DNA of 64,000 bases, taken from positions 62,001 through 126,000 of the IMG/VR virus record IMGVR_UViG_3300041411_000080; one strand, 5' to 3'. The translations under genes were made by a program, and so were the position numbers. Below the pieces are notes generated by a model. It worked only from the letters and a program-made list of their open reading frames with translations. It was not told the DNA's origin and did not search any database. Of this stretch, positions 1,051 through 62,080 are shown one piece after another; positions within the stretch are counted from its first letter, which is position 1, and each line of letters starts with the position of its first letter.

Positions 1051-1245
1051 TCAGTAAGTTAAATGTGATGGTCGTTCACAATCAAGTTTTGGATTAGATA
1101 TATCGAAGACAACTGGGCGCCAACTGACATGTTCGGGATTGGAGCGATTACCACTGTCTCTTAAGGATGCTCGTCCACCGACGGTTACATGTCGTCCCGG
1201 CATTAGTCTGGTGTCGAGATAGGTATCTTCTTGCTCTCTACTCAT
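1051..1245 (-). CDS. Small hypothetical protein
   Basis: 4-nt ATGA overlap with upstream ORF (translational coupling). Confidence 0.6.
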   Translation of the reverse strand: MSREQEDTYLDTRLMPGRHVTVGGRASLRDSGNRSNPEHVSWRPVVFDISNPKLDCERPSHLTY

Positions 1246-1433
1246 CGGAAGCGTCTCTCATTAACGTTAGGTTCATCATTGGTTCTAGAAACGTTTGTAT
1301 CTAGATGTACAAACTCACGGTAACCTTCACCCTTACGTTTGAGTCGCTCCGAGGACAATCCTTGTAGGCGATGAATAACCACATTACCGCGTCCATATTC
1401 TGAATTATAATCTAGTTTCATTGTAAACCTCAT
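1242..1433 (-). CDS. Small hypothetical protein
   Basis: First ORF of coupled cassette. Confidence 0.6.
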   Translation of the reverse strand: MRFTMKLDYNSEYGRGNVVIHRLQGLSSERLKRKGEGYREFVHLDTNVSRTNDEPNVNERRFR

Positions 1434-1446
1434 TTGTTAGTGGCGG

Positions 1447-1475
1447 CATAAAGCTTCCCCGAAGGGAAGCAGTAT
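1447..1475 (-). terminator. Intrinsic terminator, cUUCGg loop
   Basis: GCTTCCC-CGAA-GGGAAGC at 1453-1470; minus-strand tail TTTATG. Confidence 0.75.
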
Positions 1476-1503
1476 ACCCATTAGATTAGATAAGCCTAAT
1501 GAA

Positions 1504-1628
1504 AGTCGAAGAAGCACGTAGTTAGGTACTGACGTTAGCTCCCGCTAATGTTCTTAACGTACCAGGTCACCTATGGCTGGATCACCCCCTTGAACGCAGT
1601 GCGTATTTGCACGGACTGCTTCTTGACT
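1504..1628 (-). ncRNA. Candidate structured ncRNA (strand inferred)
   Basis: 12-bp closing stem AGTC(G)AAGAAGCA/TGCTTCTTGACT, inner GGTAC/GTACC stem and TTAGC-GGGA-GCTAA hairpin; no plausible ORF; lies between two terminators. Confidence 0.45.
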
Positions 1629-1659
1629 ATACCATTACACTCAGAGTATTCTTTTAACC

Positions 1660-1699
1660 AAAAAAAGAAAAGGTATAACGCCCTACCTTACGGTAGGGC
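1660..1699 (-). terminator. Intrinsic terminator
   Basis: GCCCTACC-TTAC-GGTAGGGC 1680-1699 followed on minus strand by long T tract. Confidence 0.75.
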
Positions 1700-1705
1700 T
1701 ATTAT

Positions 1706-1942
1706 TTATTCTAAGGTGAAGTTTCGGTATAACACAATGTCTTGCTCCAAATCGATAACGGTGTAGTACTTTGCGAACTCGTTATCGATCGGTAAATCGT
1801 AATTGTGATCTACCCATGCTTCCATCTCCTTCTGGGTATTGAAAGAGATCTTAACATAGTGCGTAGGACAGGTACGACCTGGACCCCATGACCGAAGTTT
1901 ATATTCGGCTTCAAACAATGGTTTAACGACTTTATTCTGCAT
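1706..1942 (-). CDS. Hypothetical protein
   Basis: AGGA RBS, followed by terminator. Confidence 0.7.
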   Translation of the reverse strand: MQNKVVKPLFEAEYKLRSWGPGRTCPTHYVKISFNTQKEMEAWVDHNYDLPIDNEFAKYYTVIDLEQDIVLYRNFTLE

Positions 1943-1990
1943 CTTTAAAATCCTTTAAGTTAACGCCTTACCGAATAGTAAGGCTATTGG

Positions 1991-2329
1991 TTACAGATGG
2001 CTGACTTGTTTCAGATACTTCTTGTAAGCATCGTCAATCATCGGTTGGTTATCACGTTGAGTGATCAAGCCACGCAGACGATCCTCACCCTGCCAGAAGA
2101 ACAGATACGCATCGATACCGTACGTATTGATCTCGTAGATACCCGGCTGGAGTACGGTACGCTGTTTAACGTACGCAATGTCACAGCGTGCATCCATGAA
2201 TCCGTGGTAATAGATGTTCCATGTACCTTCCACCCGAAGGTAGTCTTCACCATTGGTGTTATCGGGATCAGTGTTATGATCGTGACCGAAGTTGAAGAAT
2301 TGAATGTCCAGCTTTCCTGTGATTTCCAT
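1991..2329 (-). CDS. Hypothetical protein
   Basis: AAGGA RBS; hairpin GCCTTAC/GTAAGGC (1965-1984) after the stop. Confidence 0.7.
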   Translation of the reverse strand: MEITGKLDIQFFNFGHDHNTDPDNTNGEDYLRVEGTWNIYYHGFMDARCDIAYVKQRTVLQPGIYEINTYGIDAYLFFWQGEDRLRGLITQRDNQPMIDDAYKKYLKQVSHL

Positions 2330-2354
2330 TTATAGTCCTTAACTCAAAGTGAAT

Positions 2355-2374
2355 GCCCTCCCGTGTGGGAGGGC
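2355..2374 (-). terminator. Terminator-like hairpin
   Basis: GCCCTCCC-GTGT-GGGAGGGC immediately after the stop of 2381..2788. Confidence 0.6.
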
Positions 2375-2380
2375 TATTAT

Positions 2381-2788
2381 TTACATCCCAGCTTTCAAAG
2401 CTTGGATTACCGCATTATCCTGCCCACGCTTATTAGGCATGCGCTCAGGATGTTTGTACAACCACTCGTACTGCTTGAGCAGCACTTCTTTGGTTACCAC
2501 CCAGATACCATCAATCATTACCCGATCACAAGGATCAGCAATATGGAAATCCAGATGATCACCCAACGATACAAACTGACCGGTTATCCCTTTACCCGAT
2601 ACAGCACCTTCCATACACCATACCCAATCAAACACGTGATTGTTAGTATCAACATCAATATCACACGTTTGCTCACGGATACCATGCATTACAGCAGCTG
2701 CACCATACCCAACGGTTAAGCTATTAACATCAGCACCATGGGTAAAGCAGAACTCCAATACAACTTCAGCAATTTGATTCTTTTGCAT
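2381..2788 (-). CDS. Putative minimal nucleotidyltransferase (Pol-beta superfamily)
   Basis: GYGAAAVMHGIREQTCDIDVD matches the G-x-A-x3-HG-x-R-x2-T-x-D-h-D pattern; AAGGAG RBS. Confidence 0.6.
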   Translation of the reverse strand: MQKNQIAEVVLEFCFTHGADVNSLTVGYGAAAVMHGIREQTCDIDVDTNNHVFDWVWCMEGAVSGKGITGQFVSLGDHLDFHIADPCDRVMIDGIWVVTKEVLLKQYEWLYKHPERMPNKRGQDNAVIQALKAGM

Positions 2789-2812
2789 AACAATCTCCTT
2801 TGGTGTCCAACT

Positions 2813-2829
2813 GTAATATAGCTCTTAAA
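2813..2829 (-). promoter_or_regulatory. phiKZ-type early promoter TTTAA-GA-GC-TATATTAC
   Basis: TATATTAC at 2813-2820 (minus) with upstream TTTAA, matching the phiKZ early consensus as I recall it; second copy at 43857. Confidence 0.7.
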
Positions 2830-2973
2830 GATCTTTCAATAATGAGTATTACTGCGTAATAGCTTTTAAATAAACTTTTGGAATTAATCTCCCCTCCTAT
2901 AGACTACCGTATCAGAGTACTTGTCTACTCATTTTATGAATCTTTAATCATACCCCACTAAAGGGAACATCTA

Positions 2974-5103
2974 ATGATCGACTCATTTAGATCGCTTTTC
3001 GGTAATGTTACCGTAAAGGAGACTAACGCTGAGATTGTCGTATCTGGTATCAGAGCCAAAGACATTATCCGAGATATGGATAAGCATTGGAAGACGACTA
3101 GAGTCTCACAGAACATCTTCAACACAGTAAGTGGTGGTTCCTTTAGCTTTGACAAGTTCTTTGCTCCAGAGATCATGTACATTCTGGAGAACATCAAATA
3201 CTACCGTAACCGTTGGACCAGTATTAAAGCTATCAATGCCATCATTGAGGCGATGATGGAACACACGTGGTTACGCAATACCAAACCCGTAGATAAAGTT
3301 ACAACTCCAGGACGACTAGACTTCCGTAAACTGAATAACCTTAAGTTTACAGCTAAACCGTACCAGATGGAGTACTTTGAGAACTATAGTTACCGATTGG
3401 ATCAATACGATCTTAGAGGTGACTTGATGGCAGCCGCAGCAGGCTCTGGGAAGACCTACATGGGTGCTGCATTGGCCGAGATGCTCAATGCTGACCTCGT
3501 CATAGTCTTCTGTCCTAAAGTGGTCCTAGAGTCCGTATGGGTCGACTCCATCAAAGAGATGTTTAAGACACCTCAGACGATCTGGCATTCCGGCACCCCG
3601 ATGGAATACACGGGTCAACGTTGGGTGCTGTGTCACTACGACGCCATGCAGAAGCTGAACGACATCTTCGAAAACCCTAAGCTGTATGAAGGGAAGAAGA
3701 TCGTTACGATTCTAGATGAATCGCACAACATGAACGATCCTAACTCAGCACGTAGTTTGCAATACCAAGCGATGGTTAAGAAGTTCGGGTCACGTGATAA
3801 CATCCAAGGTTCTGGTACACCAGTTAAAGCACTGGGTGCTGAGATCATTACCCTGTTGCGTGTAGTAGATCCATTGTTTACCCCACGAGTAGAAGCAGCC
3901 TTTAAGAAGATGTATGGTAAGGAAGCTTCGAAAGGGTTGGACATCATTCGTCACCGCTTAGGACTGGTTTCGTATAAGGTCGAGAAAGGTGAGATTGACT
4001 CGGAACTACTCCCACCAATTATGCGGGCTTATCCAATCCGTATTCCCGATGGGGAGAAGTTTACATTGCCTGCTATCCGTAAGGTAATGGAAGCCTTCAT
4101 CCGTGAACGAGCTGAGTACTACAAGAATCGTAGACCTGAGGATCTTAAGTTCTGGGACCAATGTGTTAAGAATGCACGTTCTCAATTAAAGAGCAAGCAA
4201 GCTGTAGTAGAGTTCGATGAGTATCTGTATAAGGTACACTTGATCTCTCGTACACCTGACCCTAGATTCTTAGGTGAGGAGATGAAAGCTGCTAACGCTT
4301 TTGAGAAACACGTCTTCGAGAAACTGTTGCCCCGTGATTGGGTACCTCGTTTCCGTGATGTTAAGTCAGTAGTCAAATACGTTAACCTTAAGATCCAAGG
4401 TGAAGTACTGGGTCGAGTGGTAGGCGGCATGCGGATTGAAGCTAACGTAGCTATGATCCCACATATCGACTGGGTAGGGATTGTTGAATCCACTCAGAAG
4501 AAGACCATCATGTTTACCAGCTTTATCGAGGCGGTAGACGCCGCTGAGGCACATACGACTCGTCTGGGTATGAAGCCATTGGTTGTCTACGGAAAGACCT
4601 CTAACGACCTTCCAAACATGGTCAAGCGGTTTGAAGCTGATGATGCACTGAACCCGCTGTTGGCTACTTACGCTTCGCTGTCCACTGGTGTACGACTCAC
4701 CATGGCAGACACGATGATTCTGTTGAACTCTCCTTTCCGAGCTTACATTCTGGAACAGGCGATTTCCCGTATCTATCGTCTTGGTCAAGACTCTCAGACT
4801 TACGTTTACCAGTGTGTTCTCGACACAGGTGAGATCCCTAACATCTCCACACGTTCTGCTGACATCTTGGCTTGGTCTACTGAACAAGTAGAAGCTATCA
4901 TGGGCATCAAGGCACCAATGATCCAAGGCGATACATTTGAAGTAGCTGCTGTGGAATCTATGCAGCACGGCGACTTTGATGACAACCGACTGATGTATAA
5001 ATGTTTGTCTGCTGCATTCGAGCAATACGACATCGAGATCGACTTTAATCAATTCACGTATAAACCAGAAGTTAAACCTATGCTTCCAGCGTGGATGCGT
5101 TAA
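2974..5103 (+). CDS. SF2 (DExH/SNF2-like) helicase, phiKZ gp203-like
   Basis: Walker A AAAGSGKT, ILDESH, motif V SLSTGVRLT, motif VI QAISRIYRLGQ. Confidence 0.85.
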   Translation: MIDSFRSLFGNVTVKETNAEIVVSGIRAKDIIRDMDKHWKTTRVSQNIFNTVSGGSFSFDKFFAPEIMYILENIKYYRNRWTSIKAINAIIEAMMEHTWLRNTKPVDKVTTPGRLDFRKLNNLKFTAKPYQMEYFENYSYRLDQYDLRGDLMAAAAGSGKTYMGAALAEMLNADLVIVFCPKVVLESVWVDSIKEMFKTPQTIWHSGTPMEYTGQRWVLCHYDAMQKLNDIFENPKLYEGKKIVTILDESHNMNDPNSARSLQYQAMVKKFGSRDNIQGSGTPVKALGAEIITLLRVVDPLFTPRVEAAFKKMYGKEASKGLDIIRHRLGLVSYKVEKGEIDSELLPPIMRAYPIRIPDGEKFTLPAIRKVMEAFIRERAEYYKNRRPEDLKFWDQCVKNARSQLKSKQAVVEFDEYLYKVHLISRTPDPRFLGEEMKAANAFEKHVFEKLLPRDWVPRFRDVKSVVKYVNLKIQGEVLGRVVGGMRIEANVAMIPHIDWVGIVESTQKKTIMFTSFIEAVDAAEAHTTRLGMKPLVVYGKTSNDLPNMVKRFEADDALNPLLATYASLSTGVRLTMADTMILLNSPFRAYILEQAISRIYRLGQDSQTYVYQCVLDTGEIPNISTRSADILAWSTEQVEAIMGIKAPMIQGDTFEVAAVESMQHGDFDDNRLMYKCLSAAFEQYDIEIDFNQFTYKPEVKPMLPAWMR

Positions 5104-5107
5104 TCAA

Positions 5108-5125
5108 CGGGGACTTCGGTCCCCC
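5108..5125 (+). terminator. Terminator-like hairpin GGGGA-CTTCGG-TCCCC
   Basis: cUUCGg hairpin directly after helicase stop; weak U tract. Confidence 0.55.
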
Positions 5126-5142
5126 ACTAAAAGGTACAAGAC

Positions 5143-5508
5143 ATGAGCGCTACAGGCAAAGCTTACATGATCGCACAGATGCAAGCATATTTCACTAAGG
5201 TGAAGGCTGCTATTACTAGCGGTGGTGCAGCATCATTTCGATATAAGACCGGTACTGTTCCAGCTAATGGTCAGACGGTTTACGATGCCCCTACTGAACT
5301 GGGTTTCGCTATTGCGGACTATCACCTAGGGTCGATCGGTATCCAACTCAGTATGGTAGATCCAACTGTTCAAACTAACCCACCTATCGTTGATGCATTG
5401 ACGGTACTGCGTTATGAAATCCAAGCTAACGGTCAGATCGTGATCAAGAGCAACTACAATGGGGTAGTCACTTACCACATCCGCGTCACTATGCCAGTTA
5501 AGAAGTAA
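5143..5508 (+). CDS. Hypothetical, probable virion structural protein
   Basis: AAGG RBS, beta-rich composition, coupled to following 649-aa ORF. Confidence 0.6.
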   Translation: MSATGKAYMIAQMQAYFTKVKAAITSGGAASFRYKTGTVPANGQTVYDAPTELGFAIADYHLGSIGIQLSMVDPTVQTNPPIVDALTVLRYEIQANGQIVIKSNYNGVVTYHIRVTMPVKK

Positions 5509-5517
5509 GGTGTACCC

Positions 5518-7467
5518 ATGGCTGAGATCATCTCTTCTCTTGAACCCGGTTGGTATACAACGGGTCAAACGCTTACAGTGAAGTTCCCTGCTGATGCACG
5601 TAGGGTTATTGTTACACGCACAGAACGAAATCCAGTCTTGACTGAGATCTTGGCCTATGACCGTGGTCCTATCACACCAGTACCTGCATTGCCTGAAGGT
5701 GATCCGGGTGCTGGTCCAACCATTGATCGCCCATTCCTAGCTGTCACTCAAGATGGTCGGGGTAACGTTATCTACGACGGGGGCTTTCCTAAGTTCTACA
5801 ATAGTCAGATTGCTGCCTATAACGGGGGTTCTTACCCAGCAACTATCCCAAATACCTTTGCGGGTTTGACTCCAGCAGGTAAGTATCTGTACAATGGATT
5901 GAACTTCATTGCCAACCCACGTAAAGTTGGAGCTGGTAATCGTAAGGTATTGTTCATCGGTGATACGGTTCGTGGTTATAACTTCGTACTAACCGATTCT
6001 CACTATAACCCTAAACCGGGACAGGCTAGTGTCGACGGAGGAACAGGTTTCTTCGATACCATCACAGGTATTTGTCAAGCTGGTAACTGGACGCCTACAT
6101 ACTACGACCTTCCGAATGATACAGCTAAGATCGATTTTGACTTCAACTATCTAGATCAGTTTGCGGCTGTAGTGTTCTTCAGTTTGTACGCAACACCTAC
6201 ACCAGCAGAACGCCGTGTAACTGATCGTTTTGCAAAAGAGCTTGCATCGTATCGAGCAGCGGGTAACGGTATTGCTATCATTACTGACCACTGTGGTGAC
6301 AACTACACTAGTGTTCAAGATGCTGTAACTCGAGGTACTGTATTTGCTACTTCGGCTATTTATCTGACGAAGGAATACGGTTGCTACTATTCGGGCAACG
6401 TAGATCGGAAACCAGTATTGGTATCTGAGATCAAACGTCAGATTGGTGCTCCGGGTCCGCCTGAGACACACCCGCTGTTGGCAGGCTTAGCCGACACAGA
6501 TTCGATCTATGCCGGTCCTTCCGAATCTTTGGTTATGCCAGAGTTGTTTACCGATGAACAAGTTGATCCAACGCAAGACTTGGTAATTCCTTTGACTACA
6601 GCTGGGAAGTATCGGGTTAACGTGTTGGTACAGTTGGATGATGGTAGCATTATCACTAAGCCAATGTTGTTCACGATCATCGATCCTTCAACCACCAACA
6701 TCCGTGATTCCTTTAACCGGTCTGTGTTGGCAACGTCTACGACTTATAAACCAGCCGTGGATTACACGATCAGTCCTGACCCTACGTTTGAAGGTTCATT
6801 GCGTGGTAAGATTTTGATCGATAACAATCTGGTAGGTTTCTTCCAGACGACTGTTAACGCTGGTGTGAGTAACACAACCTACATGCCATTCGGTGGAGCT
6901 AGTGCACCTATGGTACTGAAGACTGGTTCGGTATTGAAGTTCTCGATTACTGATCCATTCGAGTACAACCTGACTACCACTATTAACCTACCTGTCGGTA
7001 CTCCGTATTGGAACGCAAGTGGTGGGCTGTCTACGTTCATTCAGCAGATCCTTCAGCATCCTTACTTCACAGGTCGGTCTGTTGATGAAATGCAGAGTGA
7101 CATGACAGCGTTTGCTGATAAGTACTATCCAGCAGCTACGCATATTGGTGTTACGACTTACAATCAGTGGTGGAAGGTTATTGGTAAAGCCAGACTTCCT
7201 TTCGCTGAGACTGAGTTTAATCCTGTCCGTCTGAGGATCTACGCTAACCTTGCAACATTCAATACGAACAAACCCGCAGTGGGCGCGGTAGGTGATGCAG
7301 TTATTATTGCTGATACCAACCAAGTCTACTACTGGGATGACTTACCGATTGTCTGGACAGCTCACACAGCGAAAGCTAACGTGTTGTTTGGTGTAGATCG
7401 TAAAGCAGTCAACACACTGAATAACTCTAACTGGGTTATTGGTGCTAACTCGACTGTAGCTGTATAA
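5518..7467 (+). CDS. Probable virion structural protein (tail/baseplate-associated)
   Basis: 649 aa, Thr/Gly/Asn-rich; central alpha/beta segment VLFIGD...FAAVVFFS...GNGIAIITDH. Confidence 0.55.
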   Translation: MAEIISSLEPGWYTTGQTLTVKFPADARRVIVTRTERNPVLTEILAYDRGPITPVPALPEGDPGAGPTIDRPFLAVTQDGRGNVIYDGGFPKFYNSQIAAYNGGSYPATIPNTFAGLTPAGKYLYNGLNFIANPRKVGAGNRKVLFIGDTVRGYNFVLTDSHYNPKPGQASVDGGTGFFDTITGICQAGNWTPTYYDLPNDTAKIDFDFNYLDQFAAVVFFSLYATPTPAERRVTDRFAKELASYRAAGNGIAIITDHCGDNYTSVQDAVTRGTVFATSAIYLTKEYGCYYSGNVDRKPVLVSEIKRQIGAPGPPETHPLLAGLADTDSIYAGPSESLVMPELFTDEQVDPTQDLVIPLTTAGKYRVNVLVQLDDGSIITKPMLFTIIDPSTTNIRDSFNRSVLATSTTYKPAVDYTISPDPTFEGSLRGKILIDNNLVGFFQTTVNAGVSNTTYMPFGGASAPMVLKTGSVLKFSITDPFEYNLTTTINLPVGTPYWNASGGLSTFIQQILQHPYFTGRSVDEMQSDMTAFADKYYPAATHIGVTTYNQWWKVIGKARLPFAETEFNPVRLRIYANLATFNTNKPAVGAVGDAVIIADTNQVYYWDDLPIVWTAHTAKANVLFGVDRKAVNTLNNSNWVIGANSTVAV

Positions 7468-7468
7468 C

Positions 7469-7506
7469 GTCATAAAGCCCCTGCTTAATTGCAGGGGTCT
7501 TATGTC
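7469..7506. terminator. Bidirectional terminator, CCCCTGC/GCAGGGG family
   Basis: GTCATAAAG-CCCCTGC-TTAATT-GCAGGGG-TCTTATGTC at a convergent junction. Confidence 0.8.
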
Positions 7507-8176
7507 ATTTCGAACGTGTGCCGTAAATACGTGCTTTCTGATCGAGCAACAGGATTGCATTCTGAGTCAGGATCACATGGAAGTTTTTCTTACGCAGACT
7601 CGAAGACAGTTTATCAATGGCTTCTTTAACCGAAAGATCAGAGTCGACGTTCTCGCGCTTCCCGTTAGGTTTAGAGCGGTCTTGTACCTTATTGCGGTAA
7701 CGCCATGTAGTTCGTTCGATCGTGTCGTTAGGACGCTTAGACTTAACCTGAGAGCGATAGAACAGCTCCAGTAAACGAATGGCTAGACCATCAGCATCTT
7801 CCAATGGTGAATCACCGTTAATCAGGTTGACAGTAGAAGCTGCCATCTGTACATGAGTCTCGGCGCTATCAACAATACCACGCATTGTAGGATCAATGTC
7901 CAAGCACTTAGTGATAACTTTAAGCTCACCGTCTACACGTTTAATTTCAATGCAACGAATGAAGTCGAACAGCGAATAGGAGCGTTCTACTTCACGCATA
8001 GCAGCAGCGTCTAGTTCTAGTTCTGCTTTATCAGTCTGACCACCATGCACCGCGATAGCAAGTGTGAGATCACTCAAGGTAGACTGAGGGTAACTGGTAG
8101 ACATCAGCAACCGTAGGAGCGTCTCAGGACGGCACCGGCGATTTGGTTGTGAAGTCATTTGTTCAAATACTGACAT
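7505..8176 (-). CDS. Hypothetical protein (start revised to MSVFEQ)
   Basis: AAGGA RBS before ATG 8176 removes overlap with upstream gene. Confidence 0.7.
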   Translation of the reverse strand: MSVFEQMTSQPNRRCRPETLLRLLMSTSYPQSTLSDLTLAIAVHGGQTDKAELELDAAAMREVERSYSLFDFIRCIEIKRVDGELKVITKCLDIDPTMRGIVDSAETHVQMAASTVNLINGDSPLEDADGLAIRLLELFYRSQVKSKRPNDTIERTTWRYRNKVQDRSKPNGKRENVDSDLSVKEAIDKLSSSLRKKNFHVILTQNAILLLDQKARIYGTRSK

Positions 8177-61672: not shown

Positions 61673-62080
61673 ATGAATCTATTTACTAGATTCCGAGAAT
61701 ACGTACGTGGTCGAGTAGTCGCGATCTGGAATTGGTTGTGGCTACAAAGCGACGTAAGTTTTCGAAGAATGTGTGTAATGGCTTCATTGCATGCTCAGTT
61801 GGCTAAATGCGAGACTGGTGACTGCGGTGCAATAGCACGTCTTAATCAGCATATGAGTTTGGTGAATGACTCCAACGCTATGAAACTTCCAACGTTGTTT
61901 GCAGGGGTGATCTGGAAAAACCTCCCGACCATCGACAAGTTGGATACAGACAGCGACAAGTTAATTCATCGTATTAAACGACTTACACCATGCTGGTTAA
62001 ACTATGCGTCTGATGACCGGTTCGAGTCGGACATTAAGGACCTGCTGGGCTTCTGTGAAGAAGCTCACAAAGCGAAGTGA
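61673..62080 (+). CDS. Hypothetical protein
   Basis: Co-transcribed after RNase H. Confidence 0.65.
   Translation: MNLFTRFREYVRGRVVAIWNWLWLQSDVSFRRMCVMASLHAQLAKCETGDCGAIARLNQHMSLVNDSNAMKLPTLFAGVIWKNLPTIDKLDTDSDKLIHRIKRLTPCWLNYASDDRFESDIKDLLGFCEEAHKAK

Follow-up and report, generated by a model that had tools for sequence, protein, structure and literature searches.

What does the gap at positions 1434-1705 of this jumbo-phage sequence encode, and on what might it act? The sequence analyzed (the window) was 64,000 nucleotides long (IMG/VR record IMGVR_UViG_3300041411_000080, positions 62,001 to 126,000), and was taken from a 320,858-bp genome with terminal repeats. The gap lies between minus-strand ORFs 1242..1433 and 1706..1942. 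A preliminary description, made from the sequence alone, proposed a stand-alone structured phage small RNA on the minus strand, driven by a phiKZ middle-type promoter, and did not recognize it as a tRNA, SRP RNA, or known ribozyme. Here, we report that the gap holds a conserved, structured small RNA gene of phiKZ-like giant Pseudomonas phages, and that its one invariant stretch is complementary to the 3′ end of the host 16S rRNA, suggesting that the RNA most likely works by binding the small ribosomal subunit.

All of the elements of the preliminary description were confirmed. On the plus strand, AGTCGAAGAAGCA (1504-1516) pairs with TGCTTCTTGACT (1617-1628), GGTAC (1525-1529) pairs with GTACC (1559-1563), TTAGC-TCCC-GCTAA lies at 1535-1548 (giving a GGGA loop on the minus strand), GTGC (1599-1602) pairs with GCAC (1609-1612), and GC hairpins lie at 1453-1470 and 1680-1699. 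The minus strand of 1440-1710 folded at −90.8 kcal/mol, against −69.8 ± 4.7 for shuffled sequences (z = −4.5; 0 of 200 shuffles folded as well). Compared with 50,697 phage records, the gap was the best-conserved DNA in the first 6 kb of the window, matching Viktualia, 201phi2-1, PhiPA3, PS119XW, and relatives at 72-80% identity, while the flanking genes barely registered. ARAGORN found no tRNA or tmRNA, and no Rfam 15 family matched in the 64-kb window (only chance-level matches, E above 3, in 1400-1750) or in 10 related loci. The plus-strand ORF 1548-1766 (72 aa) and the minus-strand GUG frames were not conserved, and the alignment has frame-breaking gaps.

The strand and ends of the transcript were assigned from motifs and from public data on relatives. 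Hairpin loops read GNRA (GGGA, GAGA, GUGA, GCGA) or UUCG on the minus strand only, and the 3′ hairpin followed by UUUAUGCCGC (1470-1443) fits the published phiKZ terminator motif (hairpin plus YTTATKYYGT). ONT-cappable-seq of 201phi2-1 placed a termination site at 229,201, among the strongest terminators tested in vivo, which maps onto ...GGCUUUAUGC|C of the homologue in this orientation. The phiKZ copy was found in 14 RNA-seq runs; a 2018 Illumina run assembled it as a separate 210-nt contig with uncovered DNA on both sides, and a nanopore cDNA run showed word depths of 1,500-7,800 over the RNA against 20 and 138 beside it. These are assembled contigs, so depth is only indicative; nonetheless, the reverse complement of the strand-switch primer abuts the A after TAT in 3 contigs, and poly-T marks a 3′ end, which fixes the strand and the 5′ end in phiKZ. 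A plus-strand RNA mimicking the 16S tail was rejected, because its loops would read UCCC/CGAA, because the terminator motif, the termination site, and the read adapters all point to the minus strand, and because about 33 of 410 helix cells are G·U and would be A·C on the other strand. For the window, both transcript ends were placed by homology, giving an RNA of about 183 nt. The features of the locus are as follows:

1680..1699 (−), terminator of the upstream gene (1706..1942), which insulates the RNA gene on its 5′ side.
1646..1655 (−), promoter element AAAAGAATAC of the phiKZ middle class, centered about −23 from the predicted start.
1628..1631 (−), TAT|A initiator, with the predicted transcription start at 1628.
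1446..1628 (−), the small RNA, about 183 nt.
1617..1628 (−), closing helix P1, 5′ strand (AGUCAAGAAGCA).
1596..1619 (−), hairpin P2 (GCAGU...ACUGC enclosing GUGC/GCAC).
1575..1591 (−), junction strand AAGGGGGUGAUCCAGCC, complementary to the last 17 nt of Pseudomonas 16S rRNA.
1525..1563 (−), P3 domain, a GGUAC/GUACC stem enclosing hairpin P3b (UUAGC-GGGA-GCUAA at 1535-1548).
1517..1524 (−), junction strand J3/1, UAACUACG.
1504..1516 (−), closing helix P1, 3′ strand (UGCUUCUUCGACU).
1479..1501 (−), P4 linker hairpin between the core and the terminator.
1445..1470 (−), phiKZ-type terminator, GCUUCCC-UUCG-GGGAAGC followed by UUUAUGCC; the 201phi2-1 termination site falls at ...CUUUAUGC|C of the homologue.
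2974..5103 (+), SNF2/DEAD helicase gene (phiKZ gp203 homologue), the conserved neighbor of the RNA gene.

The promoter motif of the preliminary description matches the published AAanTTACc (centered at about −24, with transcription starting at the last base of a TATG-like motif; PMC4666361). The window has AAAAGAATAC (1655-1646), 14 nt, and then TAT|A, with A in place of the consensus G; the spacing is the same in phiKZ, and an A-rich run ending in TAC is conserved in all five aligned phages. Two points of the description required correction. First, TGGTATAGT (1635-1627), which had been read as an extended −10-like element, holds instead the TAT|A start site of the phage polymerase and the first bases of the closing helix, and its bases are conserved as part of P1 and TAT|A. 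Second, the transcript runs past 1504, through the P4 hairpin, to the terminator at about 1446. A hairpin of different sequence sits at the place of P4 in Viktualia, 201phi2-1, PhiPA3, PS119XW, and phiKZ, and one phiKZ contig has a 3′ end just after it.

Homologues were identified with an exact-word scan of IMG/VR followed by covariance models (R1 and R2), and lie beside the SNF2 helicase gene in phiKZ, PhiPA3, 201phi2-1, PS119XW, Viktualia, Phabio, D6, Psa21, Noxifer, and about 20 environmental jumbo-phage contigs. Group A holds the window, its close relative L080, Viktualia, 201phi2-1, PhiPA3, PS119XW, phiKZ, and the members labeled L042, L115, and L148; groups B and C are more distant and come from 170-325-kb environmental contigs. 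The window core scored 144.9 bits with R1 and 99.2 bits with R2, though it is one of the seed sequences. The RNA lies within about 0.1-1.5 kb of the helicase gene in every genome checked, in varying orientation: in PS119XW both flanking genes are on the opposite strand, so that the RNA is antisense to both neighbors and is a stand-alone gene; in phiKZ it is divergent from the helicase gene PHIKZ203 and upstream of PHIKZ204; and in PhiPA3 it is upstream of the helicase gene.

All members share one architecture, a three-way junction comprising closing helix P1, hairpin P2, a single-stranded junction, a P3 stem enclosing the short hairpin P3b, a second junction strand (AACUACG, invariant in group A; ACGG in most of groups B and C), and the 3′ strand of P1, to which group A members and phiKZ add P4 and the terminator. 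On 22 sequences, 95.1% of helix cells were standard pairs, against 66% after shuffling and 23-46% when partners were slid by 1-3 columns; 17 of 21 pairs showed changes on both sides, including all four outer P1 pairs modeled and all P3b pairs, and the covariation score was 0.766 against 0.24 (reached by 0 of 500 shuffles). P2 (96% of cells paired) is replaced by GUACU-UUCG-AGUAC, CAAUGU-CAA-CAUUG, and other forms in other groups, P3 covaries (GGUAC/GUACC, GAUAC/GUAUC, GGGGU/ACCCC), and the P3b loop is GNGA in nearly all members. As that alignment was fitted to the model, a second model was searched over 17 whole reference genomes as a hold-out test; it found one hit each in Phabio, D6, Psa21, and Noxifer (E = 1e-12 to 3e-5), each beside the helicase gene, keeping 17, 16, 14, and 19 of 20 pairs, respectively, with new pair identities. 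We are highly confident that this is a real, structured, and, in relatives, expressed noncoding RNA gene.

The RNA occurs in Pseudomonas-infecting genera (Phikzvirus, Miltoncavirus, Serwervirus, Pawinskivirus, Phabiovirus, Tepukevirus, and Noxifervirus, plus D6 and Viktualia) and in environmental relatives. No covariance-model hit was found in the sampled phages of Klebsiella, Erwinia (2), Serratia, Ralstonia, Burkholderia, Vibrio (3), Kosakonia, and Aeromonas, or in Pseudomonas phage EL, although strict filters were used and weak relatives could have been missed; OBP gave only a weak hit (E = 0.15), probably false. The four exact GGRGGTGATCC matches in these 13 records (OBP included) all lie inside long ORFs. 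The absence of the RNA from sampled chimalliviruses of other host genera indicates that it is not essential to the nucleus-forming lifestyle. IMG/VR scans for members with the canonical A gave mostly coding hits and true ribosome-binding sites, with no new jumbo-phage member by flank criteria.

The preliminary description, whose loose guess of a decoy or regulator can now be made specific, overlooked the junction strand between P2 and P3. The only invariant block of the family alignment is AGGGGGUGAUCCAG, and in the window the junction reads AAGGGGGUGAUCCAGCC (1591-1575), which is the widely used 16S reverse primer AAGGAGGTGATCCAGCC with one A changed to G. The Pseudomonas 16S rRNA ends in ...GGCUGGAUCACCUCCUUA; the string ...GGCTGGATCACCTCCTTA occurs exactly in many Pseudomonas genomes, and in a P. 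putida locus it forms the last bases of the Rfam SSU rRNA match. The predicted duplex has 17-18 contiguous pairs, including one G·U, at −33.5 to −36.2 kcal/mol, whereas AGGAGG gives −9.2 and the 9-nt Shine-Dalgarno sequence UAAGGAGGU gives −12.8. Most members were first found through this very word, so their identity there proves little; the four hold-out genomes are free of that bias and read GAGGAGGUGAUCCAGCC (D6), GAGGAGGUGAUCCAGUC (Psa21), GAGGAGGUGAUCCAUAAC (Phabio), and CAGGAGGUGAUCCAGUUC (Noxifer), with ...CCAGUC and ...CCAUAAC among their endings. Thus, GGNGGUGAUCCA is kept, the middle position varies only between G and A (opposite a U of the rRNA), one 3′ position varies only between C and U (opposite a G), and real divergence begins where the target leaves the single-stranded tail and enters helix 45, the pattern expected if pairing with the 16S tail is what selection maintains. 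No other site with at least 13 of 15 matches exists in the 320,858-bp phage genome. Further complementarity (J3/1 CUACGG to the 5′ strand of helix 45, and AGGU after the motif to ACCU) occurs only in some lineages and was not kept in the model. The strand is not an ordinary ribosome-binding site, as no AUG, GUG, or UUG lies within 12 nt after the GGNGG core in any of 24 members, 8 have none within 30 nt, and no frame is conserved.

Our best explanation is a trans-acting, noncoding RNA, made by the phage's own RNA polymerase from a middle-class promoter and ended by a phiKZ-type terminator, which displays an over-long Shine-Dalgarno sequence with no gene behind it. We propose that this strand pairs with the single-stranded 3′ tail of 16S rRNA (GAUCACCUCCUUA, plus a few bases into helix 45), so that the RNA would sit on free 30S subunits far more tightly than any mRNA. 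Binding is inferred from complementarity and its conservation, with expression observed only in phiKZ and a termination site only in 201phi2-1, and we put the probability of this reading at about 0.55. Thermodynamic folds place the central GGGUGAU partly in a weak local hairpin, leaving both ends of the motif open (mean unpaired probability of the motif, 0.42-0.55; opening cost, 4.6-7.1 kcal/mol), which may act as a toehold arrangement, and the last 4-5 bases of the motif would have to invade the base of helix 45. Precedent comes from the rreB/rreR small mRNAs of alphaproteobacteria (Hahn et al. 2016, PMC5711450), of about 165 nt with 16-17 nt of uninterrupted complementarity to the 16S 3′ end, of which Bradyrhizobium rreB (17-nt Shine-Dalgarno sequence) was shown to cosediment with 30S subunits, indicating that such a duplex can form on real ribosomes. 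The rre RNAs are chromosomal, are translated into 14-18-aa peptides from a start codon behind the motif, and are not known to act in trans, whereas the phage RNA is viral, has no conserved ORF, and has a conserved three-way-junction scaffold.

Any particular consequence of binding is held with low confidence. A complete blockade is unlikely to be the aim, because the phage's own genes are enriched in Shine-Dalgarno elements (43 of 81 naive starts against 7 of 81 controls) and blocking every anti-Shine-Dalgarno tail would hurt the phage too. Compatible options are partial or timed reweighting of initiation toward AU-rich phage leaders, protection of the 16S 3′ end (the entry point for RNase R and the target of tail-removing toxins; PMC10901742, PMC12274833), or tethering of ribosomes through the scaffold to a phage protein.

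Of the alternatives, a cis-acting leader survives best, though we consider it unlikely. The long Shine-Dalgarno-like strand would park or load 30S subunits, as a standby site or a 5′ stabilizer of the STAB-SD kind, for a downstream operon reached by terminator read-through, and the short RNA would be only the attenuated by-product. In the window, phiKZ, 201phi2-1, Viktualia, and PhiPA3, the next gene downstream has the same orientation, and many phiKZ small RNAs are reported as 5′UTR products of premature termination. However, in PS119XW the RNA is convergent with or antisense to both neighbors, downstream genes differ between phages, the homologous 201phi2-1 terminator was chosen for more than 99% termination and beat the lambda T0 control in vivo, an early-type promoter (TCTATATTAC) lies between the terminator and PHIKZ204 in phiKZ, and the scaffold is conserved well beyond what a standby site needs.

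A decoy for a factor recognizing Shine-Dalgarno regions of mRNA (a host or rival-phage endoribonuclease, a translational repressor of the RsmA/CsrA kind, or a defense sensor) is similarly doubtful. The motif looks like an idealized ribosome-binding site displayed on a stable scaffold, and the RNA appears abundant; but conservation extends 8-10 bases 3′ of the GGAGG core (UGAUCCAG) and tracks the 16S sequence base by base, which no known Shine-Dalgarno-binding protein needs, about half the family reads GGGGG and lacks the GGA triplet that RsmA-type proteins need, and there is only one site per RNA, unlike the multisite RsmY/RsmZ sponges.

Equally improbable is a structured RNA whose partner is a phage protein, such as the neighboring SNF2 helicase or a nucleus or export factor, with the resemblance to the 16S complement a relic of origin or a coincidence of the protein's binding site. 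Linkage to the helicase gene is strict across all clades, the GNGA loop and junction strands are conserved and unexplained, and phiKZ gp203 sediments in heavy fractions; nonetheless, a 14-nt invariant, 17-nt nearly perfect complement of one cellular RNA end is very unlikely by chance, and the allowed variants are exactly the wobble-compatible ones. This alternative is compatible with the main model if the scaffold binds a protein while the strand binds 16S. Finally, a tiny mRNA of the rreB/rreR kind is very unlikely, because, although in the window a GUG 14 nt after the core opens an 11-codon frame (15 codons in Viktualia and 201phi2-1) and the Viktualia record annotates a 29-aa CDS over the RNA, that GUG is absent from L042, PhiPA3, phiKZ, L115, Phabio, the member labeled L076, and others, no frame, length, or peptide is conserved, and every candidate start lies at least 13 nt from the core and inside conserved helices.

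We found no description of this RNA's complementarity to rRNA in the phiKZ dRNA-seq paper, the phiKZ Grad-seq papers (PMC8545117, PMC10914614), the main texts of the ONT-cappable-seq papers on phiKZ and 201phi2-1 (PMC10914365, PMC11512511), the ChmC paper, a 2026 review of jumbo phages, or keyword searches. The ONT-cappable-seq papers report short, terminator-bounded transcripts of the same kind in the same phages, and their main texts describe other loci (upstream of gp182/gp277, PHIKZ221, PHIKZ302, p40, and PHIKZ298); the RNA may be among the 17 phiKZ 5′UTR-derived candidates or the 3 intergenic 201phi2-1 small RNAs listed in their supplementary tables. In practice, our results define a new RNA family for annotation, over which several phage records currently place spurious small hypothetical protein genes, and identify the transcript that ends at a terminator already in use as a genetic part.

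How nucleus-forming jumbo phages get host ribosomes to favor phage messages is an open question, and so far only proteins, such as phiKZ gp014 (PMC10914614), have been implicated. Here, the agent would be an RNA that base-pairs with rRNA, conserved and apparently abundant in the model phages phiKZ, PhiPA3, and 201phi2-1, and carrying the strongest possible anti-Shine-Dalgarno-binding sequence. It is possible, though tentative, that by forming a duplex of 14-17 bp with the 16S tail it would cap or reprogram host 30S subunits during infection, for example by removing the Shine-Dalgarno advantage of GC-rich host mRNAs or by making the 16S 3′ end blunt and so resistant to RNase R-type decay or tail-cleaving toxins; we know of no natural trans-acting RNA, viral or cellular, shown to work this way. 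If the hypothesis is right, it would provide a natural, compact ribosome-binding RNA module for synthetic biology and add rRNA to the list of targets of regulatory RNAs.

Group D, comprising five contigs of 47-315 kb (L019, L047, L052, L056, and L064), carries GAUGGGGGUGAUCCAGCC between a long hairpin and a second hairpin, inside a closing helix (GGAUAC.../...GUAUCC), in an intergenic gap without a phiKZ-type terminator. Model R2, the second covariance model of the RNA family, aligned only P1 and P2 (E = 2e-4 to 2e-3), and Group D may be a distant variant. Two AT-rich phage contigs of 142 kb and 62 kb (L147, 5459-5534, minus strand, and L164, near 10990, plus strand) carry AUAGGGGGUGAUCCAGUC in a short non-coding element, closed by its own helix (UUCGUGUU.../...ACACGAA) and followed by a terminator. 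The scaffold differs from that of the family described here, and model R2 matched only the motif plus one helix.

A different conserved non-coding element, ...GGCAGGGAAGGGGGUGAUCCAGUCUCUGGGG..., followed by GC-rich hairpins, is shared by small contigs of 6-16 kb, several from isolate genomes (L117, near 1098; L120; L128; L143; L155, two copies; L167; and L183). No Rfam match was found, and this may be another RNA with a 16S-tail complement in unrelated mobile elements. Further small phage contigs (L125, near 309; L152; L159; and L119, near 5696) have GAAAGGGGGUGAUCCAGUC in intergenic DNA just after a gene and before a hairpin, with no start codon at normal spacing. A scan of IMG/VR with the canonical motif identified two more recurrent, apparently non-coding contexts carrying ACAAGGAGGUGAUCCAGCC or GGAGGUGAUCCAGCC, one in contigs L202, L204, L206, L221, L223, L226, and L232 and the other in L208, L211, and L212. 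In phage contig L096 (near 1897), GAAAGGGGGUGAUCCAACC, the E. coli-type tail complement, is followed directly by a UUG-initiated 15-codon frame for a very basic peptide (MAKKMKKGGGKKKKC), which looks like an rreB-style extended-Shine-Dalgarno mini-gene.

Automatic annotation places short "hypothetical protein" genes over the RNA in Viktualia (L001, 1591-1680, CDS0006) and in the HPP-Temi and HHBS36_1 records; these are very probably spurious, since no frame is conserved. In a phiKZ-like genome (L144, minus-strand RNA), nanopore contigs showed the following ends besides the main 5' end at 2175, each in single contigs and supported at contig level only, which could be processing products or an alternative termination point:
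2169, minus strand, adapter junction
2135, minus strand, adapter junction
2026, minus strand, poly-T-marked 3' end, just after the P4 hairpin and before the main terminator

Around the RNA gene, the window contains the following features:
1966-1985, minus strand, GC hairpin followed by a UAUU-type tail
2354-2373, minus strand, GC hairpin followed by a UAUU-type tail
2974-5103, plus strand, SNF2/DEAD helicase gene

The two hairpins close the neighboring small minus-strand genes, and this run of small genes is punctuated by individual terminators, as reported for phiKZ and 201phi2-1. The SNF2/DEAD helicase (phiKZ gp203, variously annotated as DarB-like antirestriction or virion helicase) is the invariant neighbor of the RNA gene in all clades, although orientation changes. 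phiKZ gp203 sediments in heavy gradient fractions (PMC10914614), and a functional link between the helicase and the RNA is possible.
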